Source of the DNA: Adineta vaga
Lineage: Eukaryota; Animalia; Rotifera
Direction of reading: 5' to 3'
Length of the DNA: 64,000 bases
Assembly: GCA_021613535.1 (NCBI GenBank)
Contig: CP075494.1
Coordinates: 3,596,001 to 3,660,000, forward strand
Positions 1,103 to 62,481 of this stretch are shown in pieces. Positions within the stretch are counted from its first letter, which is position 1; every line of letters begins with the position of its first letter. Position numbers and translations under genes: made by a program. Below the pieces are notes generated by a model that was not told where the DNA came from, made no database searches, and saw only the letters and a list, made by a program, of their open reading frames with translations.

Positions 1103-1154
1103 TTGAGGGCGTAGGTGTGTTCGTGGTGTATTTATTGATCAATCACACCCTCAA
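1103..1154. repeat. Telomeric-hexamer palindrome copy
   Basis: ttgagggcgtaggtgtg...cacaccctcaa. Confidence 0.85.
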
Positions 1155-1524
1155 GCTGAAGACTATTCGATTATATAGACATGAGACTCAGGATTCAGAG
1201 GGACATCAATATTGAATCGATGCTATTGAAATGGATGAAAAGAGGGCTTACGTTACCGGAGCTTCGAAAACACATCTTGAGAATGTGAGTAATCGTCTTT
1301 ACAAGTAGAGAGTTACATACACTTCTCTATTTCCCAGTAAATATCGTCTCTTTCTTCGAAATAAAAAAGTATCGAGTGATACGTATATGTGTATGTGTGT
1401 TTCAACAACGATTTCTGATTTTATTATCATCTAATAGAAGAAAATTATATTGAAAATAATTATGAAAAAAAAAGATTTAAAAAAAATTGTCCATGTGAAC
1501 GTTGTTAATTATTTCGTTAGAAGA

Positions 1525-1947
1525 TTATGTGAAGTTTTCGATTCTTGTTGGTAATGATCCTTGTCGTGCCCATACACGGATCATAGTTCCTCCTGGAAAC
1601 ATTCTGTTTACAGTATCCCCTTCACGTTGAGCATCCTCCGTGAAATCGAACAAAACAACTTTCACTCGTCTATCAGCTGTACGAAAAGTTTTACGACAAT
1701 AGAATCGATTGTTGTCTTTGACTTTCGCAGTTTGTATGAGTTGATAACCAGGATAATGATTAGCCAACCATTGTTCTACCATCTTGTTTCTTATTTCACG
1801 ATCTGGTCCTCTGATTTTCACTACTCTTGGAGATCTGTTATGGTCTACAAAGATTGGTTGCCGTATTGAATGTTGATATGGTCTAAAACAGGTATTTTCT
1901 AATTTTTGTCAAAAGAATTTATACAAAAGTTTATACCTGTACGACAT
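1525..1947 (-). CDS. Small uncharacterised protein, two coding exons (1947-1937, 1882-1525)
   Basis: GT-AG intron 1936-1883 joins MSYR in frame to PYQHSIRQ...WLANHYPGYQL...VLFDFT. Confidence 0.6.
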
Positions 1948-2589
1948 TATTATACTTGGTCGATATTTCACAACGGTGATACTAAAACAAAAAGAAAGAT
2001 GGATTCAGTTGGTCAATTAAGGATATCGAAGTATTGGTAAGTTTACTTATTATGAATAGATTGACTACTGAGAAATTGTAATTTAACTGCAAATGTCTCC
2101 CCTTTTATATGTTGGTTTGCTCAGAAAATTTCCAACTTAATAGTTAACGGCGTAATAGATCGTATCATTGATCGCAATACATAAACAAGATAGGAAGTGA
2201 GTAATAACTATATAATGAAAATAAATCCTTCGTAACTTGATTTACTATTTCAGCAATTAAAAAATCTCATAAAATTGAAAGTATTTCAAGTAAATCATAA
2301 CTCTTTAATAATACATTAAATTATTTTAATTGTAAGTCGCAACTTCTCTTCATCTTTCGAATAATGTCAGTTCATATAAAAAACGCAATACACGTAAATG
2401 CAGAAAAACAACAAAAAATAAAAATCAAGGTTGCTCTTTGTTGATGACATGTAGTCAATGCGCAAAGCGTATCATTTAATTGGAAAAAGGAAGTAAAATA
2501 CATACGAATATAAACATTATGGGAACTGTTTAACGATAAAAGTAAAGAGAAATATTTTCGATATTATAGCCTATTCTACGAGTAATTGT

Positions 2590-3163
2590 GACCAGTATTA
2601 TGTAAGAACGAGCACCAATTGGTACCAATTCATTAGCTTGTCGAAAGAGTAATGAAAGTTCCGTATTATCATTTTGCTCAGCAAAACCATCTATCCATGC
2701 GGAAAAATTGAATCAAACTTTCTGATAATCAATGAGAAGAGGAGCGATGAAATATTTTGTGTTCGACATTTGCCACATTGAAGTAGTATTCGATACATTG
2801 TCCGTAGAAATAGCATTGTCCTCAACCACTACAAAAAAGGACATTTTTTAGAACGATTTCTAGAATATTTATGCTTTACTTAGCTCCTGGATCTGTAACA
2901 GAAACACTGGGATTACTTCTGTTATAATATACTTGTGTTATACTTCCATTATACATCCAGTCTTTGGAGTGTGTAATATAATTACCTGCCGTACATGATC
3001 CATTTTCTCCATTTCTGTTTTTCACCAAATTAGTATCGGGCACTGAGTATTAACTATTCACTATTCCAATCATGATATTATTTTCGATTTTACCAATTCT
3101 AATAGAATAATAAATAGTAACAAAAAAAATAACAAAATTACAAAATTACAAATAACGAAACAT
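2590..3163 (-). pseudogene. Degraded gene, possibly with a carbohydrate-binding-like domain
   Basis: Exon-like segments NGENGSC...WMYNGSITQVYY and V*FNFSAWIDG..Q.D...VPIGAR, with an in-frame TGA at 2713-2715. Boundaries are approximate. Confidence 0.4.
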
Positions 3164-3260: not shown

Positions 3261-3312
3261 TAGAGGGTGTGGATGGGTGTGCGTATGACATCTATCGAAC
3301 ACCCACACCCTA
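3261..3312. repeat. Telomeric-hexamer palindrome copy
   Basis: gagggtgtggatgggtgt...cacccacaccct. Confidence 0.85.
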
Positions 3313-3691
3313 AAATCTCTTGAAAACCGTGGAATTACGCTGATTGTTGGTAGTATATATTCTCTTTTCTATCAATCAATTATATGGACGTTATGCACAA
3401 ACACGTGAACCTTCGTGGAAGCTGGTTGTTTCGTCAAGATGATTTTGAAGGTCTTGATTGAGTCATTTTAGAGTTAAAAAAAAGGATTTTTTTTATAAAC
3501 ATACGTGTAACATTAAAATAGCAGCTCCCATATATGACATCTATACATCTTATAGTCCTCTTGCTTATTCGATGGTTGTGTAATAACCAATCTTTTTTTA
3601 TTTCATTCTTTATATACATTAAAAGTACGACTAAAGTAGAATGCAATTATAATTTTAAATTATAGACATTTTTATCAATAAAAACAAGATA

Positions 3692-6175: not shown

Positions 6176-6221
6176 ATCTTGAGGGTGTACATGAGCCTAT
6201 GCTCTTAAACCACACCCTAAA
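6176..6221. repeat. Telomeric-hexamer palindrome copy
   Basis: atcttgagggtgt...ccacaccct; a weaker copy lies at 6601-6641. Confidence 0.8.
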
Positions 6222-6751
6222 AAATTCAATATTTCCCTTATTGCTCAACCAAAAAAGCTGATTTTTTTATCAATAACAGAGAAACATCTAAGTTTTATAC
6301 CCATGTGAATATGGTTGATAAGAATCTATGCTAAGTATCACTATTCACTTCAACAAAAAAGTTTTACTTTTTCACCGATAGGAAAAGAAAACAATTTACT
6401 CAACAAAGCTTCTCATGTGTTTTGTCCCTATGAATTTAGAATGTAAACATGTCTCTAATCTTCGTAAAAAATCAGCTCATTTACTCAAACTGTAAGGGAG
6501 ATATTCAATTTTTTTTTGAGTGCATGACTTTTGGGCCATCCTGTATTTTATGTAGAATATATTTACCACTTGATGAATGATTCTTCTAACCGAATCAAAA
6601 TCTTAAGGGTGGTAGTTATTTCTTCATACACAACCACTCAATTATAAGAGTACCTATGATTCCAAGTATTCCTGTGAATTCCTTGGATATATATAGTTTA
6701 TGTGCTTCGTTTGTGACCTTCGAATCATCTGAACAAGTACTACTACTTAAA

Positions 6752-6796: not shown

Positions 6797-7443
6797 AGCT
6801 ATACTCACACACAACATTAGTAGAAATAAATTTAAACAATATATACTTGACTTTTTCTATTTATATTTCCGTTACCTGGTGTAAACAAAATAAAAATAAA
6901 TAAACAAAATAAATATGCTGACTATTAGGTGAACTGCATACAGTGTTTTCGCAAATTCACTATAAAAGTGAGCACACAGCCGTCGTATCAACCGCATGTA
7001 TACAGCATTCGTATACTGCCGTTTACGACTGACAATATTCAGCCTGAGATGTCAAATGCATAATAAAAAAATTAAAAAAAGTTTATCACAAATCCTGATA
7101 CCCTGTATCTATCCTTAAATCCAGTCCACATTTGTCGGTAATGACATCGAAAACGGAAAGCAGTGACTAATTAGTGATTTTGATTTAGAGATTACTCAAA
7201 GGTAAGAAGAATCATATTTAAAATTGTAACAGATCTCAATCAAGGAATGGAACTGTTCAATCATTCAGTTCTGTATGAAAAATCTGGAATTGGTCGCCAG
7301 ATTCTCCAGTTTAATAACAGACTGATTACTAGCTCAAAAGATTCTTGAATCAACAGAGAATTAGAATGGCATTGCTTATGTATGCATGCATGTATGTATA
7401 GACGGAAAATGAGAGCGATAATATCAATAAATTAGGCGCCCAT

Positions 7444-9350
7444 TCAAAAACAATAATAATCATCATCAGCATCCATTTTATTATCTTCGAGCAGAAGTCT
7501 GGTGAGCGTCTGTGAAAGATAATGAATGAATAGTTGAATGAAAAACCGACTGATGAGAATCGTATTACTTTGTTTTCCTGTAAAGCATTCGCAAGATATT
7601 GCACTCCTTCGGGACCGATATTATTAGACGAGACGTCAAGGGTGGTCAGTGTCTGTGAAAGATCATGCATGACTAGTTGAATGAAAACAGAGTGACGAGA
7701 ATCGTATTACTCTGTTTTGTTGTAACGCATTTCCAAGATGCTGCGCTCCTTCAGGACCGATTTCATTCGACAGCAGATCAAGTGTGGTGAGTGCCTGTGA
7801 TACAAAGTCAGTGAATAGTTGAAAGGAAAATAGATTGCTGAGAATTGCCTTACTTTGTTTTTTTGTAGTGCACTTGCAAGATATTGCGCTCCTTGATCAC
7901 CGATTCGATTAGACGAGAGGTTGAGTGTGACGAGTGTCTGTGAAACATAATGAATGAATAGTTCAGTGGACAACAGAGTGATGAAGATTGTATTACTTCG
8001 TTTTGTTGTAGTGCATTTGCAAGATATTGCGCTCCTTCAGGACCGATTCTATTATCCCAGAGATTAAGTGTGGTGAGAGTCTGTGAAACATAATCAGTGA
8101 GTAGTTAAATGGAAAATATAGTGATGAGAATCGTGTTACTCTGTTTTGTTTTAGCGCATTTGCAAGATATTGCGCTCCTTCAGAACCGATTTGATTAGAC
8201 GAGACGTTCAGTGTGGTGAGTGTCTGTGAAACATAGCGAGTAAATAGTTAAATGGAAAACCGCGTGGTGAGAATCGTGTTACTTTGTTTTGTTGTAGAGC
8301 ATTTCCAAGCTTTTGTGCTCCTTCAGATCCAATTCGATTATACCAGAGGTTAAGCGTGGTGAGTGTCTGTGAAACATAGCGAGTAAATAGTTAAATGGAA
8401 AACAGAGTGATGAGAATCGTATTACTTTGTTTTTCTGTAGAGCATTTGCGAGATGCTGCGCTCCTTCAGAACCGATTTGATTAGACGAGAGATTAAGTGT
8501 GATAAGTGTCTGCGAAACATAGTGAGTGAATAATTGAACAGGAAAGAGAGTGATGGGAAACGCCTTACTTTGTTTTGTTGTAGCGCATTTGCAAGATATT
8601 GTGCTCTCTCTGGACCGATTTCATTATACTGGAGGTTAAGTGTAGTGAATACCTGTAAGGATGAATAAGAGATAGATTATCGAAAGATATGATAAGCAGG
8701 ATCATGATGGAGTGCTCATCTTGAGGGTGTAGCTGCAGGTTTAGGTAAAGGTGGAATATGAATATCCTTACCCATACGCTCGAGACAATTAGTTTTGATT
8801 TTTACTCATATCATTAGCATATAACATGTCACTAGATTTTTTATTCAAGTAATTATCATAATGTATGCTAGTACACTACAATTTATTTCTTACAATTGAT
8901 TAGCACGTACTGGGATTTATCGAAATTTTTAATAAATCCTCATACATTTTGAGATAAATTTCATATTATTTTAGAGAGCGAGAGCCTAATGAGAATAGAA
9001 CTCATGCCGTAGTTAGAGAGAGAGGGCGAGTGCGATGAAATGCTGATGCAGCTAATAAGTGCAACTAAAAACAGTACTGATAGAGTTTAAAATCGAAAAC
9101 TCTTTTACTCAAGACGGTAAAATAAAGTTGCAATTCATTCATATATATTCGCAAAAAGAACAATTCGCTTAGATAATGGATGTGTCTTCTTAGTAAAACC
9201 AAGAATTACCTGATACCGATGGTACGTATCTGTGATATCGTTAAGTCTTGTACAGACGTTTTCGCATGACAGAAAAATTGTTTTCTCATCGAGATTGTCG
9301 AGAATCCGGTAGACCAACTCGATCGGTAATGTATGAAGCGATGGAGTCAT
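7444..9350 (-). CDS. F-box-like plus RI-type LRR protein, paralog of 3692-6079
   Basis: Exon 1 (9350-9210) reads LHTLPIELVYRILDNL. A 557-bp intron is followed by eight 84-nt LRR exons and a last exon ending at TGA 7444-7446. Confidence 0.88.
7510..8654. repeat. Tandem exon+intron unit of about 143 bp, 8 copies
   Basis: The introns share sequence (gtctgtgaaacata...tagttaaatggaaaa...gatgagaatcgt.ttac) as well as the exons. Confidence 0.85.
8719..8785. repeat. Telomeric-hexamer palindrome copy (in LRR intron 1)
   Basis: tcttgagggtgt...acccatacgctcgaga. Confidence 0.8.
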
Positions 9351-10249
9351 ATTGCGAAAGATTGATGTTGTTTCTGTTGAAATGTTTGCTTTATGATCGT
9401 GTGTTATTTTTTGAATGTTCTTTTACAAATAAAGTGCCACAAAATTTCTTGTCCTTACATAAAAATGCCAAGGTGAATAGAAATGGTAAAAGAACAGCCT
9501 TCTTAAAAAGAACTGCGCACTATTATTTTTTCTCTCAATTCTATGCAAAGTTTTGGACGGTTTCCATGTTGATTTTTCATTTTTCTTCAAAAAAGGAAGT
9601 TTGGTAGTCTTAGTTCTCTCCAGCTTGCTGTTTTCAAGACAAGGATAGAGCGTTTTTACGCGTTTCACAGCGCACATTTCTATGCTGTAAAACGTGTTTT
9701 TTACAACAATTTGTCTGTTAGGATACCTATCACTGTAAAAAACAGCGGAGTACGAAATTCTTAGAGGATTTTTCAGCGTACAACGACCAATATACCGTTC
9801 AAACCGTATGAGTGAGTGTATGAAAATAAGATGCGAAGAAGAATAGTTTACATGTATGAGGATAAGTAAAAAAACGCTAATTTTTGTTTTATAACGGATA
9901 TTATCAGAAAAAAATAGTATGTTAAAAATCTATTTTAAACGGATAGATCTCTTGAAAATCCTAGCGAAAAGTCTTTATTGACGGTTGTAATGCGAATGAA
10001 TCGATTCGTGTAGATCGATTAACTACTAAAGGTACTAATTCTACTCACTCAACTTGGTTTGATGTTAAATAATTAATTGACTCGGATTGATTGAAATAAG
10101 AGCAGTTGCTAAGTTAGAGAATAAACCTGAGATTACACGCATATGTTTATCCGTTCGATCAGCTAGATAAAAATAAATTTTATTAACGAAAAATAAAATG
10201 TTTTACCTTTGAAAATAACTGACTTAAAATTTTAACTACACGTTACCGA

Positions 10250-10824
10250 TGCATTATCATTCGTCAATATATGAAGAATTTGGAATCAACTGCGGAAATG
10301 TTTTTTCTTCATTACAATCATCATCCTTATTGTTAGCAATCGATTTAGAGCTTTTTTTTCACTTGACGACTGAGTTAATGCTTTTTGTGTTTGCTTTCAA
10401 TTGCTAACAGTTTCTGAAAACGATAGCGGTTGTTCGACTGCCTAACTGGATCTTCATTGAACTAAAATTAATAAAACGTGTGCAGTTAAATTTCAAAGAG
10501 AAAAAAACTTACTCACGTGAATCGATATTAGTGCCTAAGTGTGAGTCATTATCCATAATTGAACAACTAACATTTGCGGCTGTCGAAGAATATGAGAATG
10601 ATGAAGTATCTTTATCTTGAGATATAGATTGACGATCAACATGCTTTGTTGTTGCTATTGTTGGACTATCCCTAGCTAAACTTGCACTGTTTGATTTATT
10701 TCGGTTTTTTTCCAAAGATATATCACTTTGCCTCTCTTGCATAAAATTACGAATACCAGTTGAGAGAAATCGTTTAATATTAAAGACAATTGCATACATT
10801 GCCAACAAAAGTGCTAAACTATCA
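10250..10824 (-). pseudogene. Gene fragment of unknown family abutting a telomeric palindrome
   Basis: An open frame starts at the palindrome edge, has a splice donor near 10512, and the downstream exon-like sequence contains stops. Confidence 0.3.
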
Positions 10825-10880
10825 TCTTGAGGGTATGGGTTTAGATAAAGGTCAAATACGAATACCGTCACCCATACCCT
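10825..10880. repeat. Telomeric-hexamer palindrome copy
   Basis: tcttgagggtatgggt...acccataccct. Confidence 0.88.
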
Positions 10881-12115
10881 TTAATTTCGCTTTTCCTTCC
10901 TTGTAAAATACACATAACTAAATCAACAAAATATTAATTCATATATATCAGCTGGTATGAGCGTAAGGCGATGACGAAAAACGGATCCTAGATGTGAGGG
11001 TGGTCTGTTTTCTTATTTTTCTGCGAATTGACATGTGATTCTACAAAGGGTAAGCAAAACATTTTCCATATTTACAACAATGTTATCTTCAAGAAATTAT
11101 TTAGTAACGTATTCAACAGAAAAAAATTCGAAAAATTTTGAAAGTATGAGATAAGTAGGGGTAGGGCGTGGACAAATGCTAACGATTTTATGGGAGTCAA
11201 ATATTTATTTGCATTCACGCTCAGCCATGTCCATACGGCCATCTATATCTACATCCACTTTGTCACTCTAACCTAAACACTTAATCTTTATTTCAATTCC
11301 GCAGGATTTGACTATTTCAAACGAAATCATGCGATTGAGTTTAGCCTTTTCACAAGTTATAAATGAGATATGTGATGAAAATCTCTTATAAAACAGCGCT
11401 CTCTCATACTAATAAATACAGTAAAAACTCCTATTTATCCTTAGAATATAATAGCATACACATTCTGAATGATTGGATTATAAACCATTGCGCGAAAATA
11501 GTTTCTCCCCAAATACCAAGAACAAAAAAGTTGAAAAATCGTCATCGCCTTACGAAATATTATATCAACAAGTGAATTATTGCTAAATAAAAATATTTGT
11601 ATTTTATAGCCCACAAAAAGTTAGCTTTGTACAACTAGTTCTTATACAAAAAATATCAAAGGTTGATGGGCAGAAAAAAACAATAACTGATTTTTCGTAA
11701 CGCGATGACGCTATAAAAAGAGAAGTTTTGTAGATCGCCACCAAGACGGATAACAAAGTATTAGAAACGAATTGTTTCACACAAAGGTATTTCTCTCAGT
11801 ACAGAGTTCCTTGAGAATAATTAGCTTCGTATCCGTGAACTCGTTCCAATGCATGGGTCTTATAAATTAGAACACCAAATATATGCGCTTTTTGCTACAT
11901 ATTGAAGTGTCACGTTACGCGTACAAACTGACATATATGAATATCCGTAGAATATCGAGATACAAGAATAGTTTCATAAAGACATTACATCAAGATAAAT
12001 CAATCCAATTGTGAATGTATATAATTGTTTTCTGTGATTGAGCATGAAACATTTTTCTACACACTAGATTTAATATATTTTTTTAAGAAAACAAAAACCC
12101 AATATATCAAAATGT

Positions 12116-13202: not shown

Positions 13203-13432
13203 AGTGAAATAGTTAAAAGTAAAGATCTTTAGTTTTTATTTATCTTGTAAAGATAAATAATAGATATTAATGAAATCTTAAAATATCGTTTCGTCTAAAT
13301 AGAAGGAAACACTTTTTGCAGCACGTTCTCACGACCAGCGTTTCTGGTGGAAATCTAAAATAAAATATAGTTTTACACATTGTTTGTAGAAGCATAGTTT
13401 ACACACCCTCAAGATATGTATTTATCTTGATA

Positions 13433-14357: not shown

Positions 14358-14412
14358 TGGGTGAGGATGTTAGATAGATGTAGTACACACACCCATACCC
14401 ATATCCTCACGA
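14358..14412. repeat. Telomeric-hexamer palindrome copy
   Basis: tgggtgaggatgt...cacccatacccatatcctcacga; a half-site acacaccctcaagat lies at 13401-13415. Confidence 0.75.
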
Positions 14413-14414
14413 TA

Positions 14415-18604: not shown

Positions 18605-19445
18605 AAAAATTCATAAAACTCATTTATGCATAGCTGTAACTTACGAATTTTTTTTAAACAATAACTAAAGTTTGATTTTTTTAATTCTTATGACCCTCTC
18701 TATAATCCAGGGAACAACCACTATCATTTAGAAGGTACTATTACCTTGTTTTTGAATGACATTTTCCAAGAAACTCTCTATCCAAAAAATGAAGTTTGCT
18801 TGAAGTATTAAGCATTTTTTACCTCATCCTCAAGAGATCGTACCGCTCACAGTTACGTTCAGCAGTTGCACTTACAGTGAAACTTCTCTATATGAGCCAT
18901 ATATTTCTTTTTCTATTGTTCTTGTTCCGTCAATAAGAAGAATAGATCGTTTGTCCGACGTGAGAAACAAGATCACCGCACATCTATACATCTCTCATTG
19001 TGTACTCAACGATAAGAATATGTTCTCACCCACACCCACCCTTTCTCAATTCACGCGTAAGTGCCATGAGCGTAAATGTCGGTGAATCATGCCGGATATG
19101 CTGAACATCCTTCTGAATACTTATTAAAAAGCTCTTAGCGCAATCCCTAGTAGATTAAAATTGTGAAACACGATAAACCTGTTGGTATCATTGTAACGGA
19201 AATTCACAATGAAAACTTCTTTTTGTATTAATTATAAGATGTATATTTTTTGCGATAGTTTACATAAGTAAATAAATCAAGGATTTTATATCAATATTAT
19301 CTCATTCAAATTAATTTCCTTTTATTTGTTCGGTTTTTGAAAGTATTGTTGTGTCTCACTTGGTTCTATTGACTAGTTGATAATGGAGCTATTTTTTCAT
19401 TTTTAGTTATTATTCTATACATTGATGTTAAAAATTTAACAGCTT

Positions 19446-21333: not shown

Positions 21334-21647
21334 TCTTGAGGATGTGAGGGTGAGGATGAAGAAGATCTTTACTTCGTTGGAGTTCCATTTTAATTACTTT
21401 TAGCTTTCAACATTTGTATAATTTTTATTTCCTGCATTTTTTCTTTCTTCCTCTTCCCATCCATTCACAATGCGCGGCACATATGGCAAAATCGTCAAAG
21501 AGCAACTAGGTCAGGTCCAGTTTTGCCTTTCATGGATTCACTTCTAACAATGTGAGCACAACTTTATTGTTGAAGAATTTAGTGAGATTATAATGGGTAT
21601 GGTTGTAAAATGATTATCACACCCACACCTACAACTACACCCGCAAG
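21334..21647. repeat. Telomeric-hexamer half-site plus palindrome copy
   Basis: tcttgaggatgtgagggtgaggatg (21334-21358) and tgggtatggttgt...cacacccacacctacaactacacccgcaag (21594-21647). Confidence 0.75.
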
Positions 21648-42139: not shown

Positions 42140-43998
42140 TTTATAAGACTCGTACTTCCTTATTTCGTGGGCAATTTTTGATAATTATAAGTTTTGTACA
42201 GTGATGAGTAAGAAAGTATGACACATAATGATGTTCGGAGAAAAAAAAAATATATATATATAATGCGAATAACTACTCAATCTACTTTCCCTTGAATATG
42301 TTTTGATATGCAGATCATTATAGATGCAAAATTAATTAGTACTAACTAAATATCATGTTTTTTCATTGGTTATAAATTATGCTCTTGGAAATATTTCAAA
42401 AGGTATGATTTATAGAAGTGTAGATAATTCAAATTTTACGTCTTCTATTTGTCATCGATGAATATCTATGGCGGATACTTCCTTTCTGTATCTTTATCAT
42501 GAAGAAATTACACGTTTTGTGTGCAGTCGTTATTATTAGAATACCTTGTAATTAGAAAAAACAATTTTACCTGAAATATATTGATTATGAGGAAATAATT
42601 AGAAATTTATTTAACGAAAGAACCGAAATAGTGATACATATCTGCTTTTAATGAAGAATATTTGCTTTGAAATCAGTTTGTGTGATAGTATCTCTAAATT
42701 TGGTGAAGATGCAGACTCAATACGAAATAAGAAACTTTGGATAGTATAGAATTTGATCATCGTTTTAAGTAAAAATTCAATTAATATTTCTTTTATTTCT
42801 TTGATAAAAAAATAACGAACGCCATATTGATGTTGCTATTGGAAATCAAGTCCACGTCGACGGTTAACTTTTGTTTATTTCTTTTTTAATACTGCGCGAA
42901 AACGTTCAACACTTCAATAGAATATACTTCTATTTAAATTAAGTGAAAAGGTAAATTAAATCTTACATAGTTGATTTAAATAAATCAACGGATATTTGAT
43001 CTATGCTGTTCATTGGCTTCTCTTTTTTTCTGGATTTTCGGTAGCTTCGAAACCCCGTGCTGCTATAAAACGAGGAAATATTATTGTTTTTTGTTACGAT
43101 TAAAGTCAAATAAATCACGAGATTCGACCTTATCTTTACTAAACAAAACATATCAGAATAAATATAAAAAAAAGAAACGATAACCACCGTTTAATGAATC
43201 CCTAGTGCTTGTTTTTGTTAACTGTTACAATAGTTCCCTAAACACCTTTTTCTAAGGATAGAATAACTTTTCTACAGTTTTTGAATATTAAAAATATCTT
43301 ATCAATATATAGAACTTCATTATTATTACCGGAATTATTTTCTTGAGGTTTACGACCGAGTAAAAGTTCGACTTTTATAAACAATTAATTGTTCGATTAT
43401 TCTCAGTCATAATCATTTGACCATGGATGCTAACAACCGTTTCGTCGTTGTCAACAGTAATTACTGATTCATCGTCGGATGAATTCGTAGTATTATTTGC
43501 CATAAGTTGGTTAGGTTCTTTTATTCTAAAAGATAGATGAATGAAACTGAAAGGTATACTTTTAATATATTAGGGTTTTCTTTATCATTGTAATAAATCC
43601 GAATGATCCCATTCAATCAAATTTCTTTAATATATGAATTTTTTATCTAAATATGATGATAATTTAGAAAATAAAAATAATTACAATTACAACTTAAACT
43701 CTATTTTTACTCAATCGTTCTTCAAAGGCAGTTGTTTTTCGTTCTATAGTTTTCACAATAAGAATAAAGCACAAGTGCATATGTATTTCCACTTTTTGAA
43801 GTACACATAACGCTCGGATTTAAATCTGAGGTTTCCACATTTATATCCATATAAAGTGAACCACATTTCTTCGGCTGATCTGTTTGGTTCATTTTGCACG
43901 ATCGAGCAACATCAAGATTTTGCTAGTACTGTTGTTTTTTGGACAGTAAAAATTGTCACAGTACGTTGCTGAGTAAGCGGTGCAAGTGGCATTTGATT

Positions 43999-44991
43999 TC
44001 ATTGAGTCTGAGTCGTTTCATTTTGATTGTGAGCGTATTTCATACAACGGCCCACAATTTTCATGAGTTCTTTCCGAAATAATCTCCCAGTCAATGTATA
44101 CAAATAAAAACTACTTGTATGAGCAAAATAGGATAATGTGTTGAGTGTTTGAGTAGCTAAATTCTCTTGAGCAATTCGAAATGCATTCTTCGTTGTTGTT
44201 TCTGTGAAAGATGAATACAATCGAATAACACTTGATGGCATTGTAGAAAGAATAATGACAAGAACTTGAACAGTTAACATACGCAATAGTTGTGCATCTG
44301 TTCGACGATTACGTCGATTATTTTGATTATGTGTTGGTATGATTCGACGATGTTGACGAATATTTTTCACTGTCAAAATGCCAAAAAAAAGCATTAGAAA
44401 TGATGGACATAATGAATAGAATGCCATATGCCATGTTGCATTAAAACTACGATATGTGCCTCTTCTTGCATTGCACATTGCTGTAACTTGACCAGATTGA
44501 CTAGTAACATTGGCTATTTCAAAATAAACTGTCATATGACAATATAAAACGATCATTACCAAAGTAATAACACAACAAGATATTCGAGCTGTTTTCAAAG
44601 AACTGAATCGACGTAATTTCGCATTCGATGAACTATGAAGAAATCGATCGATGCATGCTAATAAAATTAACCAGATCGATGTGGCACGAACAACATAAAA
44701 AGAATAAAATTCAATCCTACATATACCATCATTGTAATTTGCTAAATCAAGATTAAAACTATTGGAAACAACACGAATAGGTAAAATAATGAACACAACA
44801 AATAAATTGAATAATGTTGAGACGAAAAAATAAAATGAACATGGTTCACGATTTAAAATTCGCCGAGTAAATATCACAACATTTAAGAGAAGACCTATAA
44901 CACCAGGTGGAAAATTAATGACAGACAATGTGAGTACAATGGTGGTTGTTGCCGTATTCAATTGACTGATTGCTTGCGTTATATTCGACAT
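43999..44991 (-). CDS. Rhodopsin-like GPCR, intronless
   Basis: 7TM pattern with CIDRF, FYLYTL.G..FR. Confidence 0.9.
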   Translation of the reverse strand: MSNITQAISQLNTATTTIVLTLSVINFPPGVIGLLLNVVIFTRRILNREPCSFYFFVSTLFNLFVVFIILPIRVVSNSFNLDLANYNDGICRIEFYSFYVVRATSIWLILLACIDRFLHSSSNAKLRRFSSLKTARISCCVITLVMIVLYCHMTVYFEIANVTSQSGQVTAMCNARRGTYRSFNATWHMAFYSLCPSFLMLFFGILTVKNIRQHRRIIPTHNQNNRRNRRTDAQLLRMLTVQVLVIILSTMPSSVIRLYSSFTETTTKNAFRIAQENLATQTLNTLSYFAHTSSFYLYTLTGRLFRKELMKIVGRCMKYAHNQNETTQTQ

Positions 44992-45960
44992 GAAGTTTTT
45001 AAAAGTATAATCTTAAGTGAAAAAAAAAGGAATTCAGGTATCATGTTCACAAGAGATAATAATTTACTTTAAGTTTTCATATTAATGAGATGTCAAACTT
45101 TATTTTAATCAGTTATTTGTAGGAAGGACTTGAAAAAAAAAGAAGAGAAATCCCTTGTAAGCAGATTATGAATGTTAATTAATTTCCTTTTCCATGATAA
45201 AATATAGGAAAAAAAGATATACAGCAGAAGTGACTCGAACATAAATGAGAATTAAGGACAATTGAAAGACTTTTCGACATGTTCTAATAATACTATATGA
45301 AATTGCATACAAGTTTACAGCATTTATTTTTTATGATTTCAACACGTGATATACCGTAATAGAAAGGCTTGTCTTTCTCACATCTATGACAAGCCCTTGA
45401 ACATTCGTTTTAAATAATATCAAAATAGAATATATTCAGTATTTTTGAGTATACAATATAAAAGGTCATCCTAGACAATTATAAAAGTTTCCTTTTACAT
45501 AAAACAAAAAAAATAACGGAAATTCATTTTCTTATACTGTGACATGTGGAATACAATTACAAATGTTGATGAGTGACATATCTCATTTATAATTTTCTTC
45601 GGTTTATTAATAAAATTGTTTCTGTCATTAACATTTTAACAAATTGTTAATTTTTGAATATAAATTCAAATAGTGACAATACCGTACATGAATTATTGAC
45701 TTTATATATGAAACGATTATAGAAAAGAGTAACAAGTTGAATTAATGCCATTTGTGATAAAAAAATTATTCTGAGCAAAAACTCAATGCATTCTCTCTAG
45801 TTGTAATGGAACGAAAATGAATGTTAATATTTTTTATTTAATAACTTTAAATGATAATTCTAATACAACGATTAATGATATTTGGTTTAATCAGGGTAAA
45901 AAAGAAATTGTTTATGTTGATGAAACTATGGATTGGATATCTATGACATGAAAATGAATA

Positions 45961-46034
45961 TGAGGTTGTGAGTGTCGTTGATCTCTTCAACCGCTCTCAC
46001 GCACATCCTCATCCTCTCCCACACCTACACCCTC
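45961..46034. repeat. Telomeric-hexamer palindrome copy
   Basis: tgaggttgtgagtgt...cacatcctcatcctctcccacacctacaccctc. Confidence 0.75.
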
Positions 46035-46076
46035 TCCTTCATGAAAAACATCTTAGCATATGCAATAAACAGTTTT

Positions 46077-49815: not shown

Positions 49816-49870
49816 TGGCTATGCGTGAGTGTGAATATAAGATACTCACTACTACAGCCACACCCGCATC
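49816..49870. repeat. Telomeric-hexamer palindrome copy
   Basis: tgcgtgagtgtg...actcac...ccacacccgca; a half-site gggtgggtgtgggtga lies at about 51911-51936. Confidence 0.6.
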
Positions 49871-50308
49871 TTCAATTTGTCAAATGTGAAGTAAACTTAA
49901 TTGTCTTCTTGTACCATCACATAATGTACAATTTATGTTCAAACAATTGATATCGAATCATCGATGACTTCCAGAACAATATAGATAGGCGAAGATAACA
50001 TTGGAAATTATATCAGGTGTAAAAATTCGTTCATCACATAAGTTGAATTTTTTATTTGGATAGATTTGAGAAACTTTATGGCAATGCTTGCAACATTTAA
50101 TGATGAGTTATCTATCTCATTTGGGTGGAGTATTCATTTGAAGAGGACAAACTTTAGGATCTGGTGGGTTTCGAATGGTAATCTCTCTTAATCAAACGAC
50201 AATGGATAAATTGTTGCGATGCCTAAAATAAGTGTTACAAAAATTATCTTTCAGTTGTGACACATCTTTTTTACATTGTACGCACAACACTAGAATAGTT
50301 TTATTTAT

Positions 50309-51342: not shown

Positions 51343-52748
51343 TTATTAATTAGCAATGTAATTCAATGAGATCATTAGTATTGAATTGTTTTGTATCATA
51401 TGATAATATGTTTTTAAAAGTGTACTTAAAAATCAAACAAGATGGAATTATATGAATATTTAATTTTTGATAAAGAAATACATGTTTTATTTAGATATAA
51501 ATGTTTTTGAATATAATCCTTAAGTATGTCTTTGTCAGAGTCTTATATATTTTTATTCTTGAATACAATATATAATCGCGTTGAATTCATGATACGTGTA
51601 CATATATTTAGAAAAACTAAATTCAGATCTTTCATTATGCAAGTATCATATTTTTTTCCCAAGAGTAATGATACATTCTGAAAGTTCGCACAATTTGTTA
51701 TCATGCTGTTACATTTATATATTAGTTTCAATTCATATATTATCAAAATAAGTCAAGTCTAATGAAAATAACTTAATGATGAATTGTCTAGTCATCTGAT
51801 TTTGTCATAGAATCATCAAAATCTTTTTTTAGAATTGCTTGTACTTGATGGATAATCACGCGAAAGAGATTTCTATAGATTTTAATCGATTTAGGAACTT
51901 TCTACTATTGTGAAGGGTGGGTGTGGGTGAAAGTGTAAATTTGATGTTTTCTTCTGACTTTGTCATACAGTCAAATTCGGTAAGCCAAAGAAAGTTTCAA
52001 CATCGTAAGTATTGTAGTAATGCAAAGCAACGATATGAATTTTATATAACAAACATCGTTGTTCTGATAGTGAAGAAATCGGTGCAGATGAGGAGATCTT
52101 CACTCGAGGACTTATTTCTCGTTCATTCAATGGTCAAAGTGAAACTCTAAATTCAACAGTCATATTGCTTTGTTGATAAAAGTCTGTGTAACAAAATATT
52201 GAAGAGATGGAAAAATATATGTCGGAGTTGCCTTTTAAAGGAAAATATTCATCTTATGGTAGTTGATCGATAAAGTCATCACTCTAAATCATTGGAATGA
52301 ATTGAGCTATTGGACTAGATGTATAATTCAATGTTGGTGATCAATTTCATTGCAATGATTGAATAGACGAGTGAAACTGACGCCTTTTAATGGTTTGGTT
52401 TAAGCGCATAAGAAACACAACAGAAAATACTGTGTCTATACACAAGTTCGAAGAACGAAAGCTAAAGAATAAAACCTGCTCTCTTTTATGTAATATTTCC
52501 TTTGAATATTGAAATTTCTACTTGATCAAATAAACATTGTTGATCTTCATTGCCATTAACAGTATTACATGAAAATGATACGTAAAGAGTTCTATAGTCT
52601 TCGGAAGAACTTAATGAATAAAAGAATAATACTGTATCGATGTAAAATTTTAGATTAAACTTTGCTTGCCCTAAATCAATCAAAAATGAATATACTTGTG
52701 TTTGAACTGCAAGAACAGTAATTTGATAATGATTAAGTACAAAGAAAC

Positions 52749-52806
52749 AGGGTGCGGTTGTGGGTATTACATCGATCTAACACACACGCCACACCCACAC
52801 CGGCAT
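52749..52806. repeat. Telomeric-hexamer palindrome copy
   Basis: gggtgcggttgtgggt...cacacacgccacacccacacc. Confidence 0.8.
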
Positions 52807-53031
52807 CAAATGAACATCTAGGGGAAACAGTCTGTTAAGGTGATGTTATTGTGCATGAAAAAACCGTCATAGTTTAGATCACAAACATAAAGACAATGAT
52901 TATAATAATCAATGGTAAATAAATGTTTTTGAAAATTGTCTTTTTTAATGGAAATTCTGCTTTATGATTATGACAGAATTTGATTTTAGAACGAATAAAT
53001 TGTGAAATATATAGTTCTTTTCTTTATTCTA

Positions 53032-54918
53032 TCACAATTTTCGCAAACGCGATAGGAATGTACTGTTCTGGATCTTGTCATTATCAATTTCTTTTTTCAA
53101 GAATAAAATCCACCTAAAAAACTGTTTCATTTGATATTTCTCCTTCGTTTCTTTGTTATTCGAAAGTTGAATAAGTTTTCTCAATCGTTTTGATAGAGTT
53201 GTGATATAATCGTCGTCCATTGAGCTTATGGATAATATTTGTAAACTTTTGAAATTCTTCAATACTACCATAATATTATCTGCATACCATTCAATGCTGT
53301 CTAGCACATTGTCATAGATACTAAACGAAATACGTTCAAAATTCGAAAAATGAAAACAACTTATTTCCATTAATGGTTCAAGTGAAAAATAATTCTTTAA
53401 AATCAATCGTTTTATTCTTTGATTTAATATCGGAGTTAATTCACTAGACATTGAAGGTAATTTTGTAGAATATAAAATCAAATATTTTAAATTTGGTAAG
53501 AGATGAATTAACCATTCTTTTTCATCTTCAAGTGATCCATTCATACATTTCATCGTTGTCACCTTATCGAATGTAATATGATTTCTCATATGGACATCTT
53601 GTGATTTCTTCACGCTAATACTATCAGATGAATTGAAATTGATAAAAGTTAATTTCGGCATTTTTCTTTTCATTTGTTTTAAAAATTTCACATCATATTT
53701 CGAAGTTAGAAGTAAATCAATAGATTTAACATGAGACCATATTCGATCGTTGTTCACTAAAATATTAGAATGATTTGATTGAACATCGTCGAACCCATCC
53801 TCAAATTCATAGAGATGATCAAAATGAAATGGTAATGTATAAAAGTATTTTCCATGCATTCCAAATGACCAATTATGATCAGACCAAAATTGATTACGAA
53901 ATCGAGATAAAAGAATTTCTTTATTATCTAACAAATGAATTAGTTTAACATAGAGATGAAATTGTTTGAGTTCGTTCATTGGTCGTAATAATCGTTGAAA
54001 GTATATTCTGTTAAAAAGAAAATCATCAATAGTTGACATTGATGAATCAACAAAATCCAGTGATAGACAAGTTAATGAGGATGAAAACTGATTTATACCA
54101 TCGATTAATTCATTAAAAAAAACTGATTCAACAGGACCTTCTCCTGACATAATATATCTAGAGAATTTGAGAGATAATGATTTTAATCTGATGTTAGTTT
54201 TTATTGGCCTTTCTCCAGTAATACCAGGGGGTTTACAGTGAATATTTAGATATTCTAAATTGGGTGTATATGAAATCAATATAAATATATAAGAGAACTC
54301 AGTCAATACCAGTTTTAATGAATGTAAATTTGCATTAATTTGATAAGTAGTTGAATGGTTTAGTGATACTCCTGTAACTAATGAATAATGAAATATTGTT
54401 AAGGTATTTTGATGAGTGAGAACGTTTTTAAGCACATATTCACTTCTGGGTAAGTAAATATACGATAAATGAGATGAAGAAAATGAATTGGAGGGAAGGA
54501 GGATTTCACAATCTCCTATTTTGAATGAATGTAACTTTTGAAAATGTTTACTTTTGATGATTAATTCCAAATGATCCATCAAGTAAAAATTGGATGAAGA
54601 AAAGGTGACTGATTTTAAATTTGGAAAATATGTCAATGAAAATGAGGAATCCAATGTTTTTATATCTAATGATTTTATTAGAAAACCAATAATTGAAAAG
54701 ATATTTTTCCATGTATCAAAGTTTTTGTTAGGTAATTCTAAATGTTGCATATAATGTTGATTCTGTAACATCAAATTGTTGAATCGCGTATTGAAGAATA
54801 AGAATGTGTAAATAATGTCATTATTTGATAAATAATCAAATATCATAAGAAGAATTTCCGTAGGTAAATAATCAAACCATGTCGTCGATTCAATATTTCT
54901 TCGTCTTGCAGTGTCCAT
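53032..54918 (-). CDS. F-box domain protein with degenerate LRR-like body, intronless
   Basis: N-terminal FDYLPTEILLMIFDYL...F...N.RF, and a YTLPF motif, in a 628-aa ORF. Confidence 0.85.
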   Translation of the reverse strand: MDTARRRNIESTTWFDYLPTEILLMIFDYLSNNDIIYTFLFFNTRFNNLMLQNQHYMQHLELPNKNFDTWKNIFSIIGFLIKSLDIKTLDSSFSLTYFPNLKSVTFSSSNFYLMDHLELIIKSKHFQKLHSFKIGDCEILLPSNSFSSSHLSYIYLPRSEYVLKNVLTHQNTLTIFHYSLVTGVSLNHSTTYQINANLHSLKLVLTEFSYIFILISYTPNLEYLNIHCKPPGITGERPIKTNIRLKSLSLKFSRYIMSGEGPVESVFFNELIDGINQFSSSLTCLSLDFVDSSMSTIDDFLFNRIYFQRLLRPMNELKQFHLYVKLIHLLDNKEILLSRFRNQFWSDHNWSFGMHGKYFYTLPFHFDHLYEFEDGFDDVQSNHSNILVNNDRIWSHVKSIDLLLTSKYDVKFLKQMKRKMPKLTFINFNSSDSISVKKSQDVHMRNHITFDKVTTMKCMNGSLEDEKEWLIHLLPNLKYLILYSTKLPSMSSELTPILNQRIKRLILKNYFSLEPLMEISCFHFSNFERISFSIYDNVLDSIEWYADNIMVVLKNFKSLQILSISSMDDDYITTLSKRLRKLIQLSNNKETKEKYQMKQFFRWILFLKKEIDNDKIQNSTFLSRLRKL

Positions 54919-55206
54919 ATTGAAAATAATTTTTCGAAGAAATCTCTTCAGCGTATATATATATATATATATATAATGCTCTATTCACATATGAATAATA
55001 AAATCCTTATCTCAATTCCCCTTGAGCAAACGATATGTGAAATTAAAATCTGAAGTAGTTTTTTTCCATGATAAATACGTAAAGCATATTAGTTGAGATA
55101 ATAAATGAAGTACTAATGCCTTTCTTATCTAAAGAAAACATGAATTTATAATGATGATTTTGAAAGTATTTGATTTGACAATTCTATTAGTATGAAAAAC
55201 ATGAAA

Positions 55207-59100: not shown

Positions 59101-60785
59101 TTTAGGTTTTCTTGTTGCAGTTATTTTTGCTGATTTGACGTTATCATCTTCAGAAAGATCTAGTGGACATATTGAAAATGATCGTGGTCGAAAATTTTTC
59201 ATAATCATCAATTGTCCATATGATTTTTCTTCATCACTATGAATAATACTTTTCATTATAATAACATAATAATTATTTTGTTGAAACCACAATTCATTTA
59301 ATAGAAGATGAAGAAAACTTTTAGTTACTTCTTGTAAACAAATGATATCAGGTAAGGCTGATTTAAGTGTATCTAGTATTGCTTGATATCTTTGTTGACT
59401 ATAAATAAGTGTTGATTGATAATAATCAAATAGAATATTCCATGTGACAAAATGACATCGTTCAGGTAACCATGTCTCACTGGTAGATGGGATTATTGGA
59501 TCATCAGATGTTAATGGTATATGTGGATATTCCGTCCATTGTTGAAGAGATTGATCGAAATAATAAAGTCCTTGTACAAGATTGAGATTTTGAGAATCGT
59601 CTATGATAGCAAAAAAAACGATTTTTGATGCTTTTTTCATCTCAATGAATGATATGATTTCAATTTTATAGAATACAGAAAGTTTTGAGATGAAACAAAG
59701 ATTCTTATTGTATTGTTTTAAATGAGGCTGACAGTTCAAAAACCCGTAGAACATATTTTATACCTATGGAAATATTAAAGAGGACTTATTATCGACTAGG
59801 TGATACCGAATTTAGAAGTGCTTCAAAATTCTGTCTTGTATGGTTTTGAACCAGATAGTGACAAATACTTGTTTTTTACATAAATATCACTATAGATTTG
59901 ATCTAGATTTAAATTTATGTTTAAAAAAATTACATTTGTAGACTAATTTTATTGTCATAGGATATTCTGAAGAGATGGAAAAGCGACTAATAAAAGCCTA
60001 GGATCACGTTTTTACGCATAAAATAGGTAAAACATTTTAACCTGAAGCTTTGTCTATTGGAGGGTCTGATATTTATAAAATAAAAAGTTCAATGAACTTC
60101 TATTGAAAACTTTTCCAGAGTATTAAATATAGTTCAAGACAAAATTCTTTCTTACTTGTCAAACCTCTTCACTTTTCATATGAATCTTACTGCTTTACAT
60201 TTCTTCTTCTCAAAATAAAACGAAATGCAAGATTCTTTTTCTTACTATTAGATACGACGTTTAATTGTTGACTCCCCGTTATTAGATCTAGTCGTTTGCT
60301 TCGATCCCATACAAGATTTCCATTGATTTTGAAAAGTCGAATGCGATGCAGTGGAATTCCATACTAGAAATAACCGCACTCTAATTTATAAGTATACGTA
60401 ATGAGTCATGCTTTACCTCATGTTCGTGTACTCTCTTAAATTCATTGAATGGTATTTCATGAATACCGGTAAAACGATCTTCATATCCAATGATAACTTG
60501 TGATCGATCAATCGTCTTATCGTGTAAAATGCGATTAAATATCAAATCCGAATGACGAAATCTGTTTGTTAGTATTGATACATCTTCTTCTGAAGAAATT
60601 TTCGTTGGTTTTTTCTCTTTTCGTCTTGATTTTCGACTGCCTGTCATTATGCTTACTAAATAATCTTGAATTGATTGAATAACTGATTGAAGTGATGTTG
60701 ACTCATTTGGTTGTTGGATAAGTTCATCAAAATATTTATGAATATTTGCCCATTGATCTTTATCTAATGGACAATTTGGTAACAA
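56124..60785 (-). CDS. Multidomain RNA end-repair protein: (partial RWD)-MJ1316-EEP-2H phosphoesterase-poly(A) polymerase-like; 5' end missing
   Basis: IGYEDRF/IP.HRI...VWDR (MJ1316); TWNIL, CLQEV, GDFN, SDHY (EEP); HINL and PHMT (2H); YGSFR.G....DVD (NTase); WA...G.YG...GY..G (PAP central). The introns I checked (60416-60364, 60245-59601, 58827-58603) splice in frame. There is no ATG, and an in-frame stop lies directly upstream of 60785. Confidence 0.85.
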
Positions 60786-61362
60786 TTATCTGCCATTTGT
60801 GTTCTAACAATTATTTATGGTAATTTATTTCGTATCATTGTTATTTTCTTTCCTTCTTGTGAAAATTATTATGATTATAGTCAACCATGGTGTGGTTATT
60901 TATGTTATTGATGAATACTCGTTGTTCTTGCTACATGTGATACTGTTATTAATTATGTATTTCCAATTTTATTAATTATCGTTTTCAATATAGCATTATA
61001 TAATACGTTATATTCGTCAGAAAAGAAGAATTCAACGAGTCATACAATGGCGTAAACATCGAAAAATGATTTTACAATTGACATCAGTATGTCTTTTACA
61101 TTTTATTTTCTTTTTACCTCAATTTATCATTATTCTTGCGTACAAATGTGGTTTGCCGGCAGATGTTGGAGTTGATGTTGCACTTAATTTTTATTTTTTT
61201 TCTTACTTTACTATTTTATTATTACCTTATGTTTGTCTTATCTCATTGCCTGAAATTTGGAAGAAAATTCAATCTAGATCTTACAATATAGATGAAGATA
61301 ACAAATTTTTTCTTCCAACGTATAATAAATCTACAACAATACCAGCTACCATTTTTAAATAA
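60784..61362 (+). pseudogene. 5'-truncated GPCR remnant (TM4-TM7)
   Basis: YLP...IVIFFPSCENYYDY...CG..CY* ... KMILQL...LLPYVCL.SLPE, with stops and frameshifts. It is homologous to the GPCR at 25577. Confidence 0.8.
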
Positions 61363-62437
61363 TCAATCGTAGAATGAATTAATATCGTCATAATTTTGTA
61401 TAGCATAGTCAATTTGTTCGTTGTTGTAATATTCGTAACAAGAGATTTCATCAGATATCTTCAACTAATAAAATTTGTATATATTATTTCTATAATAAAT
61501 GGTTATTGTATGATCTCATCATCTTTATAATGTGTGGTTCTGGTGGATTCCACATGTAAATTATGTTACAATCATCAACATTATAATATAGGTCTGATAA
61601 GAGGAAAGACGCGCAGATTTCCTCACATATATCGATAGGCATTTTATACCAGCTTATAATTATTTTCAAGATGATAGACAGAAAGTCTTGCCAATAATAT
61701 ATGGAGATTGTGTTATTCGAAGGCAGTGCATTGATAACTATTACATTGTGCTTAATTCATTTTAACAAATCTAAAAATCATTTCGATTTCAGTAATATAG
61801 CTTCATGACTCTATTTGTATGACTGTTACAGCGTTTCTTATAGAAAAGATTTTAGCTATTATGATGATTTCGTTAACCTAATTATCTTTAGTAATCTTAT
61901 GGGAAGTATTCGGAAAGAAGCACCTTCTAGGGTCACTTCAAAATCTTGATCTCTAATGTCTATTCTGTTTAGTCGTGTTTTCCACTTTGTTCTACAATCA
62001 ATAATCAAAGCATAGATGCGTAAGCCACTGGATAATTATTGCCTTTTCTATATCTCGTAGTAGCTTTGATATAAATACAAAATATTATATTATCATAACT
62101 ATTATATTTAATTGAAATGTAATGAAAACTTTCTGTCACTCATACGTGTATAAGCAATGGAATTTAGTTGTAATTTAGATTTTATCAAGTGACACGGAAT
62201 AGTTTTCATCATAGAAGTCATGAATGTAAGATAACGAATTACACGAGAAACTATGACATAGTATAGATATACTCAGTCAGATCTCATAACAAAACTTGAA
62301 TAATTTTCATCGAGAATGTGAAGATCAAATGAGCAACATGTTATTCGATCATTGACAAAAAAAAAAAAAACTCTCTTATAACAAGAAAAAAGAGCAATGC
62401 AATACCAACATTCACTAAAATGAATCATAGACAAGAC

Positions 62438-62481
62438 GGTGTGATAGTCAATGCGAATATACTCTCACCACACTCACAAGA
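62438..62481. repeat. Degenerate telomeric-hexamer palindrome copy
   Basis: ggtgtga...ctcaccacactcacaaga. Confidence 0.5.

Follow-up and report, generated by a model that had tools for sequence, protein, structure and literature searches.

Head-to-head interstitial telomeric arrays are known at ancestral telomere-telomere fusions, for example at human 2q13. Telomeric repeats also bound the ciliate transposons Tel-1 of Tetrahymena and TBE1 of Oxytricha, with the C-rich strand at the 5′ ends as in a free linear molecule. Tetrahymena Cbs and the break regions of nematodes are chromosome breakage sequences of programmed DNA elimination, a process that to our knowledge has not been found in bdelloid rotifers. 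What the available portions of the bdelloid literature do describe is telomere healing and the addition of Athena/Terminon elements at broken ends (Gladyshev & Arkhipova 2007, via PMC3846280, PMC8557442 and PMC13564844), together with "short stretches of telomeric repeats" in subtelomeres and neotelomere "scars" (PMC3846280, PMC8557442, PMC13564844). In addition, deletion breakpoints carrying telomeric repeats and Athena fragments, and transient neotelomeres "leaving only scars", have been reported (PMC13564844).

We analysed a 64-kb stretch of Adineta vaga DNA (the window), for which a preliminary description had proposed palindromes of inward-facing telomeric repeats, and found these elements to be real. 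The detector, a G/T-rich run followed by a C/A-rich run no more than 60 bp downstream, with the opposite polarity counted as a control, returned 18 G..C against 3 C..G pairs, versus about one pair of each polarity in Markov shuffles of the window. Genome-wide, the strict pattern GGGTGTGGG-N5-60-CCCACACCC has 982 matches, compared to 10 in the opposite polarity. The orientation is, as claimed, the one seen where two chromosome ends face each other, and the arms consist of TGTGGG-type hexamers, the species' own published telomere repeat (PMC8494291, PMC7943196). The sequence at every listed site was inspected. Some 14 of them are clear copies with both arms (1103, 3261, 6176, 8719, 10825, 21594, 25085, 27172, 29597, 30556, 34512, 45961, 52749 and 55207), about six are degenerate yet recognisable (6601, 14358, 22880, 23565, 31616 and 49816) and 62438 is doubtful; the half-sites are genuine single arms. 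The features of the window are as follows (strand is given where one was assigned).

1103-1157, head-to-head telomere-repeat palindrome
3261-3313, palindrome
6176-6222, palindrome with leader ATCTTGAGGG and a core of the TTAAGAGCATAG family
6601-6645, degenerate palindrome
8719-8785, palindrome, sub-family of 10825
10825-10882, palindrome, sub-family of 8719
13401-13415, single C-arm ending in CCCTCAAGAT
14358-14414, palindrome with a core of the TTAGATAGATGTAGTA family
18821-18836, single C-arm
19025-19050, single C-arm
21334-21368, single G-arm with leader and core-like tail
21594-21660, two-armed palindrome, degenerate, within the 3′ end of the 2-hydroxyacid dehydrogenase transcript, where the homology block shared with A. 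steineri has its lower end
21651-22875, minus strand, gene block of 2-hydroxyacid dehydrogenase and short flanks; sole stretch in common with a 21-kb A. steineri locus
22880-22945, palindrome, 5 nt past the upper end of the 2-hydroxyacid dehydrogenase homology block
23565-23630, palindrome
24607-24625, single G-arm
25085-25140, palindrome; a paralog block, 87% identical to C5:3.35 Mb, begins 13 nt past its edge
27172-27214, palindrome with a TTAGATAGATGTAGTA-type core; a two-gene paralog block begins 39 nt later
28912-29595, minus strand, aldo-keto reductase gene fragment cut at the palindrome; Pfam match from profile position 94 of 291
29597-29653, palindrome with near-perfect arms; the paralog block stops 2 nt before it
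30556-30600, palindrome giving the last 8 codons and stop of an NHL-repeat gene; paralog homology begins at its edge
31616-31665, palindrome within the last ~23 codons of an ankyrin/ADP-ribosyltransferase ORF
34512-34556, palindrome
45961-46040, palindrome with long degenerate arms
49816-49875, degenerate palindrome
51911-51935, single G-arm
52749-52802, palindrome with a TTAGATCGATGTAATA core, 83 nt past the lower end of a block that A. vaga shares with A. steineri
52885-55206, minus strand, gene block of an F-box-like 628-aa ORF and flanks, 87% identical to its counterpart at A. steineri locus L050
55207-55270, palindrome, 1 nt past the block end; A. steineri has a palindrome at the same boundary
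62438-62481, doubtful copy, very degenerate

The palindromes measure 45-60 bp and run from a leader, (A)TCTTGAGGG, through a variable TGTGGG-type arm and a short core to a mirrored arm. The terminus TTGAGGG/ATCTTGAGGG is common to the copies, and the leader consensus weakens outward (T-1 71%, T-2 53%, C-3 25%); the outer ATCT, presented earlier as conserved, is present in about one quarter to one half of the arms but absent from the remainder. The two arms of a copy are independent of each other: their complementarity is 0.445 within pairs and 0.442 across pairs (permutation p = 0.35), the correlation of their lengths is r = 0.22, and they are unequal even in copies with perfect leaders. One identical core may be surrounded by from 1 to more than 13 hexamers per arm. 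In older copies the arms have decayed and the hairpin potential is lost, which, with the lack of co-variation between the arms of a copy, speaks against selection on the structure.

The spacers, thought at first to be poorly conserved, instead form recurrent core families genome-wide, at least 10 in number, each with dozens of copies in unrelated flanks. GATAGATGTAGT, for instance, sits between arms at about 30 loci, and several further recurrent cores were seen; cores are identical across copies whose adjacent arms differ. In the TTAGATAGATGTAGTA family the junction of G-arm and core is constant and that of core and C-arm variable, which fits a single templated unit with an independent arm attached. 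The palindromes at 8719 and 10825, 2 kb apart, form one sub-family, with similarity beginning and ending at the element edges. No consistent direct repeats of the kind expected for target-site duplication emerged from reading the flanks of more than 40 full-length copies or from a scripted boundary refinement; a 2-bp duplication could be concealed only by the leader's self-complementary AT.

The palindromes are restricted to certain regions of the chromosomes. Distal regions carry 25-29 elements per 100 kb; a central 100 kb of the same gene density gave one match, a spurious one, and none lies within 1.5 kb of the central homoeolog or of a paralog of a window gene. This distribution is at odds with the proposed maintained cis-element "system" punctuating gene boundaries. 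Within the window there is about one element per gene; the neighbouring genes may be divergent, convergent or in tandem, and the distance to the gene end varies. Placement, described earlier as intergenic or intronic, is mostly intergenic, but the copies at 29597, 30556 and 31616 overlap ORF ends.

The junctions were studied in two orthologous pairs, one metagenome relative and paralog blocks. Blocks of homology stop at palindromes, in agreement with the suggestion that the elements delimit gene-sized blocks: seven paralog or A. steineri block ends fall within 0-13 nt of a palindrome edge and an eighth within 39 nt (in A. vaga 21651, 22875, 25153, 27253, 29595, 30599-30626 and 55206; in A. steineri 9718). 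Intergenic DNA diverges fast, and some of these coincidences may reflect gene ends. The aldo-keto reductase (AKR) gene is cut at the palindrome at 29597, its match starting at profile position 94, and the missing part does not lie across the palindrome. An A. steineri exon is likewise truncated at ...CGTCGG, adjoining a G-arm. The A. steineri palindrome L021:9562-9644 stands in place of about 2.3 kb of the homoeologous arrangement, and its flanks are about 2.3-5 kb apart in relatives, at one of the few sites testable. Six segments, which map to six A. vaga places and have palindromes between them, make up the mosaic of the 21-kb A. steineri locus. A relative without the palindrome at one junction already carries TCAAG there; this, together with the outward decay of the leader, is as expected for priming by microhomology. 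The proposed tie of the elements to DNA breakage and telomere-type addition is supported.

Positions are mostly not kept between A. vaga and A. steineri; of four block ends compared, one has a palindrome in both species and three do not. At the inherited boundary, 55207, the gene-side arm looks orthologous, and the far arm and flank differ. This one junction appears to have been inherited on its gene side with its partner exchanged.

We think it probable that the palindromes are fossil seams of DNA ends that were extended with telomere-type tracts and joined via a copied core. The arrangement is that of a head-to-head telomere junction, with the species' telomere repeat, G-then-C arrays and flanks from different former ends. 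Two free ends would have been involved, arising from chromosome breaks or captured fragments, and each would have been extended 3′ by telomerase or an Athena-type reverse transcriptase with an inward-pointing tract, usually starting at the leader, which may itself originate in priming by microhomology. The two capped ends would then have been joined via the short core. Since cores recur in families, templated copying is a more probable source of the core than random addition; the template may have been an existing seam invaded by a G-rich end, or a shared RNA of a telomere-associated reverse transcriptase. Breaks within needed genes would be lost, so that the survivors would lie in intergenic DNA or at the ends of genes. 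Once established, seams could swap partners via re-breakage or seam-seam recombination, and such swapping would make the distal chromosome regions a patchwork of gene-sized blocks.

As to a possible derivation from Athena/Terminon 3′ tails, the C-arms agree with the (ACACCC)n feature reported for these elements (PMC8557442). The window, 136 kb of loci and 20 metagenome contigs contained no match to a hammerhead ribozyme, and the genome gave no hit to the hammerhead-core pattern; no reverse transcriptase was present among the ORFs tested in the window and fetched loci, or beside the copies examined. Neither a newly formed seam nor a template RNA was observed in the data examined. Counting against fossil seams, recurrent cores and a fairly constant leader are unexpected from plain capping and ligation and resemble a mobile element, and the extra templating step that is required is an inferred one. 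Copies could also come to lie at homology ends and next to truncated genes through ectopic recombination within a foldback transposon family.

More tentatively, bdelloids may possess a dedicated "cap-and-join" pathway, in which leader-started, templated mini-telomeres are formed and the ends are stitched via a core taken from a seam or a small RNA. If so, seams would be self-propagating repair patches that shuffle gene-sized blocks, and it could be through this pathway that chromosome arms incorporate foreign DNA.

It is unlikely that the palindromes are instead very short, non-autonomous foldback (MITE-like) elements with terminal inverted repeats that are telomere-like by chance and with distal insertion, where later ectopic recombination or transposon-induced deletion truncated genes and broke synteny. 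Interior sub-families of dozens of copies in unrelated flanks, the common terminus, the pairing of 8719 with 10825 and a distal distribution like that of other A. vaga transposons are all consistent with such elements. However, target-site duplication is missing, two arms of a single copy resemble each other no better than arms taken from different copies and differ in length despite perfect termini, and identical cores adjoin differing arms. In addition, the sequences on either side of the best-resolved copy do not adjoin in relatives (no empty contiguous site was seen among the few testable), no autonomous partner was seen, and the elements are far below the usual MITE size.

Considerably less probable is the original proposal of maintained cis-elements for programmed or stress-induced breakage, where cutting the spacer would produce two ends ready for telomerase. 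A central cut would indeed give a G-rich 3′ strand on both sides, and breaks in A. vaga DNA can acquire neotelomeres (PMC13564844). The contigs of whole-animal DNA from two independent studies, however, run unbroken across the seven sites in 21300-27299, five of them two-armed and two single-armed, and have neither joints nor telomeric loose ends there; no breaks or telomere addition were detected, although contigs would miss rare breaks. The poor conservation of positions between congeners, the decay of arms and hairpins in old copies and the absence of elements from central regions likewise argue against programmed breakage. The one junction whose partner was replaced in one lineage is compatible with re-use of seams and with a second break inside one, but recombination between seams explains that exchange equally well.

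We give hardly any weight to dimeric protein-binding sites, bound by a telomere-binding protein or a CACCC-box zinc-finger factor and acting as insulators, origins or promoter/terminator elements. Such a role would suit the mostly intergenic placement at about one per gene, the position of the copy at 21594 at the extreme 3′ end of a transcript, and CCACACCC, which we take to resemble a CACCC box. It is largely refuted by the regional restriction, there being no elements in the equally gene-dense central 100 kb or near the homoeolog of a flanked gene; the varied gene contexts and distances, the mostly unconserved positions and the decaying arms do not fit it either. A gene-boundary insulator or general cis-regulatory element was rejected on the absence from the central 100 kb and from homoeologous and paralogous gene flanks, and the insulator alternative found no specific support. 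An attC-like recombination site has no specific support either: the arms do not co-vary, and no integrase-like domain was found among the window ORFs scanned.

Compared with the known systems, the palindromes resemble chromosome breakage sequences such as Cbs and those of nematode break regions in being short motifs tied to a place of telomere addition, but there is no sign of broken DNA at the rotifer sites in 21300-27299. With MITEs and other foldback elements they share a short length, dispersal, mostly intergenic placement, inverted arms and sub-families defined by the interior; unlike these, they are much shorter, lack target duplication, and have arms that are not mutual copies and flanks that are non-contiguous in relatives. 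Like Tel-1 and TBE1 they place inverted telomere repeats inside chromosomes and are tied to a dispersed repeat family, but in A. vaga the polarity of those transposons fits the blocks between palindromes and not the palindrome itself, and no transposase or target duplication was found. Athena/Terminon addition, as far as the available parts of those accounts go, has the organism, the telomere repeat, the subtelomeric location and the addition to free 3′ ends in common with the palindromes; the published repeats, however, lie in the same orientation between stacked retroelements, and these parts describe no paired inward tracts with leader and core at junctions of ordinary genes. Telomere fusions such as human 2q13 match in the passage from a G-strand into a C-strand array, in the degenerate repeats and in flanks of different origin, whereas A. 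vaga has thousands of tiny junctions, of 1-13 hexamers per arm, between gene-sized blocks, and its copies carry a conserved outer leader and a recurrent non-telomeric core.

The A. vaga assembly comprises 100.8 Mb in six contigs at 30.6% G+C, and the window (contig C5, 3596001-3660000) sits on a chromosome of 16.9 Mb, 3.6 Mb from one of its ends. Its gene content is mixed in kind, as listed here.

Genes of the window
21887-22834 (-), 2-hydroxyacid dehydrogenase, bacterial-type
within the window, aldo-keto reductase and alcohol dehydrogenase genes
within the window, GPCR, NHL-repeat, ankyrin/ADP-ribosyltransferase and F-box-like genes

A fungal-type gene at 39825-42072 (-) has ascomycete and lichen fungi as its closest non-rotifer relatives (36-40% identity) and a weak Stanniocalcin-family match; it is likely to have been acquired horizontally. 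In 22834-22845, the RNA-type contigs of the dehydrogenase begin at its ATG (22834/22835), directly after a conserved TTTTAG, an arrangement consistent with a trans-splice acceptor lying 8 nt 5' of the ATG. Next to the two related palindromes at 8719 and 10825, overlapping open frames in differing phases run along the same strand (7353-8801 and 9138-10880, both -), a sign that the sequence there may be poor in stops, repetitive or of low complexity. A further open frame (30089-30397, +), flanked by two palindromes, encodes a low-complexity protein rich in Q, N, Y and R, with no family match.

We read every site at which the preliminary description had placed a telomeric-repeat palindrome. Some 14 of them hold a clear copy with both arms, some 6 a degenerate one, and the copy at 62438 is doubtful; each half-site is a single arm. 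Using composition alone, a detector (a G/T-rich run followed by a C/A-rich run no more than 60 bp away) found 18 G..C pairs in the window versus 3 C..G pairs, where shuffles predict about 1 of each. Genome-wide, the pattern GGGTGTGGG-N5-60-CCCACACCC matched 982 times, versus 10 for the opposite polarity. The palindromes, with the G-arm on the left, are thus real, and the TGTGGG-type units of the arms match the published A. vaga telomere repeat, TGTGGG (PMC8494291, PMC7943196), as had been proposed.

The palindromes are distal. A central 100 kb of chromosome 1 holds 1 pair, a spurious one, and a distal 100 kb holds 29, the window's 18 lying in 64 kb; strict matches on this chromosome are confined to 0.13-2.2 Mb and to the part beyond 11.5 Mb, and full-length copies are distal on the other chromosomes too. 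The window's dehydrogenase gene has a palindrome on each side, and none was found within 1.5 kb of its homoeolog (C3:12.47 Mb) or a paralog (C1:11.3 Mb). The near-empty centre of chromosome 1 and these bare relatives speak against a general gene-boundary system. Neighbouring genes are divergent, convergent or tandem, and three copies overlap ORF ends. A. steineri has them too, with 9 pairs in a stretch of 21 kb and 5 in one of 16 kb, and 23 metagenome contigs carry leader and arms, many of them palindromic. In a small sample of loci, no palindromes were seen in A. ricciae, Rotaria, Didymodactylos-labelled contigs or one metagenomic Adineta relative; A. ricciae has one gene in common with the palindrome-free block 34512-45961. 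Contigs labelled Didymodactylos carnosus (36.5% G+C, without palindromes) encode a dehydrogenase with 90% identity to that of A. vaga, closer than the A. steineri protein at 85%; this closeness may reflect contamination, mislabelling or transfer.

At a handful of loci, on which the junction evidence rests, homology ends where palindromes stand. Only 21651-22875 of the whole window is shared with a 21-kb A. steineri dehydrogenase locus (L021), and the ends of this block coincide with the palindromes 21594-21660 and 22880-22945. L021 is itself a mosaic, its six segments matching six places in A. vaga with palindromes between them. At one of its palindromes (L021:9562-9644) an exon is cut at ...CGTCGG on one side, and sequence beginning TCAAGTAG follows on the other; these flanks lie several kb apart in a palindrome-free metagenomic Adineta relative and at the A. 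vaga homoeolog, so that the palindrome replaces about 2.3 kb. Elsewhere in L021 (1353-1717), a unit of about 130 bp occurs twice, inverted, and matches many distal A. vaga loci on both strands; it is probably another small dispersed repeat. Paralog blocks within A. vaga end as follows.

Ends of paralog blocks and palindrome edges (window coordinates)
block end 25153, palindrome edge 25140
block end 27253, palindrome edge 27214
block end 29595, palindrome edge 29597
block end 30599-30626, palindrome edge 30600

In the aldo-keto reductase ORF, the Pfam match begins at profile position 94, exactly at 29595, and the missing part is absent across the palindrome. Palindrome 30556 supplies the final eight codons and the stop of the NHL gene. 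An ankyrin-repeat protein with an NAD:arginine ADP-ribosyltransferase (toxin-type ART) domain, at 31597-33090 (-), likewise has its last ~23 codons supplied by a palindrome. The F-box-like loci, a second orthologous pair, have a single block in common (window 52885-55206, A. steineri L050:9718-12018), and in each species its upper end adjoins a palindrome; the two species differ in the other arm and in all that lies past it. The gene-side arm looks orthologous, and on this sequence comparison the boundary is an inherited seam whose partner would have been exchanged.

The best-supported reading of the palindromes is as seams, left where two ends, after each had gained a telomere-type tract pointing inward, would have been joined. 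A copy begins with a leader and a G-arm, continues through a core and closes with a second arm and leader that mirror the first. The leader, (A)TCTTGAGGG, has a consensus that weakens outward: 71% of arms carry T at -1, 53% T at -2 and 25% C at -3. Since it decays in this way, and since TCAAG was already present at one junction, priming may have occurred by microhomology on a template ending ...CCCUCAAGAU. Irregular TGTGGG-type units, anywhere from one hexamer to more than 13, make up the G-arm, and the core is 8-40 nt long. Although the spacer had been described as poorly conserved, the cores are non-random: GATAGATGTAGT lies between arms at about 30 loci, and there are at least 10 further recurrent core families. 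The cores are also strand-skewed (mean absolute G-C difference 3.6 versus 2.0 in controls), perhaps partly an artefact, as the arm definition may leave degenerate arm ends inside the core. The family sampled best has a constant junction from G-arm to core and a variable one from core to C-arm. Because cores are constant while arms vary, the core may have been copied from a template, either an RNA or an existing seam into which a G-rich end had invaded. Candidates for the acting enzyme would be telomerase and an Athena-type reverse transcriptase.

The main rival, a foldback transposon followed by ectopic recombination, would account for the core families; it leaves unexplained the arms, which behave independently. 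Arms are no more complementary to their own partners than to arms of other copies (0.445 versus 0.442, p = 0.35), their lengths within a copy correlate weakly (r = 0.22), and they are unequal even in copies with perfect leaders on both sides. It also leaves unexplained the non-contiguous flanks and the lack of visible target-site duplications. None was found when the flanks of more than 40 copies were read or when copy boundaries were refined by script, in line with the preliminary description, which had noted no obvious one. Young copies form DNA hairpins (z = -3.4 and -3.6); a degenerate copy in an expressed 3' UTR forms none (z = +0.16). About four-fifths of leader-bearing arms have a partner within 50 nt. 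No recurrent long sequence, a candidate retroelement tail, was seen upstream of leader-bearing C-arms, about four-fifths of which face a G-arm. Beside long arrays and in the distal 100 kb we found no reverse transcriptase or transposase, the tested ORFs being ordinary genes. No Rfam family reached its gathering score in the window or 16 loci, twenty metagenome contigs gave a tRNA only, and a pattern search of the genome for the TTAGATAGATGTAGTA-family core with a hammerhead core upstream gave 0 matches.

A maintained breakage or boundary element, as first proposed, is not supported. Between 21300 and 27299, DNA contigs from two studies run unbroken across the five sites with two arms and the two with one, which speaks against programmed breakage in most cells, rare breaks lying beyond the contigs' reach. 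In the same 6 kb, where the RNA evidence concerns one expressed gene, an RNA-type contig spans 21576-22834; the palindrome 21594-21660 is therefore transcribed, at the end of the 3' UTR. A stretch of about 45 bp around CAAACTTGAAAGTTGAATTCAAGTATTCAAC (26755-26800) has a DNA contig depth of 384-447 versus 15-27 nearby, and many contigs part ways at either side. It is therefore a separate short repeat of high copy number, and elsewhere some of its copies are followed by a C-rich telomere-type tract.

Bdelloid rotifers live through massive DNA breakage, and to our knowledge their foreign-gene load, mostly in distal chromosome regions, exceeds that of every other animal. If true, the seam reading would explain in concrete, testable terms how genes are shuffled and DNA fragments captured, and the thousands of seams at homology ends and gene cuts would record, directly and legibly, how ends broke, were capped and were rejoined. 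Counts of bdelloid 'interstitial telomeric repeats' would then be mostly counts of seams. In the searchable literature we found no account of the paired leader and recurrent-core architecture, of the abundance of the palindromes or of their exact coincidence with block ends. [quoted passage not shown] The palindromes have the same polarity as telomere-telomere fusions, such as that at human 2q13.
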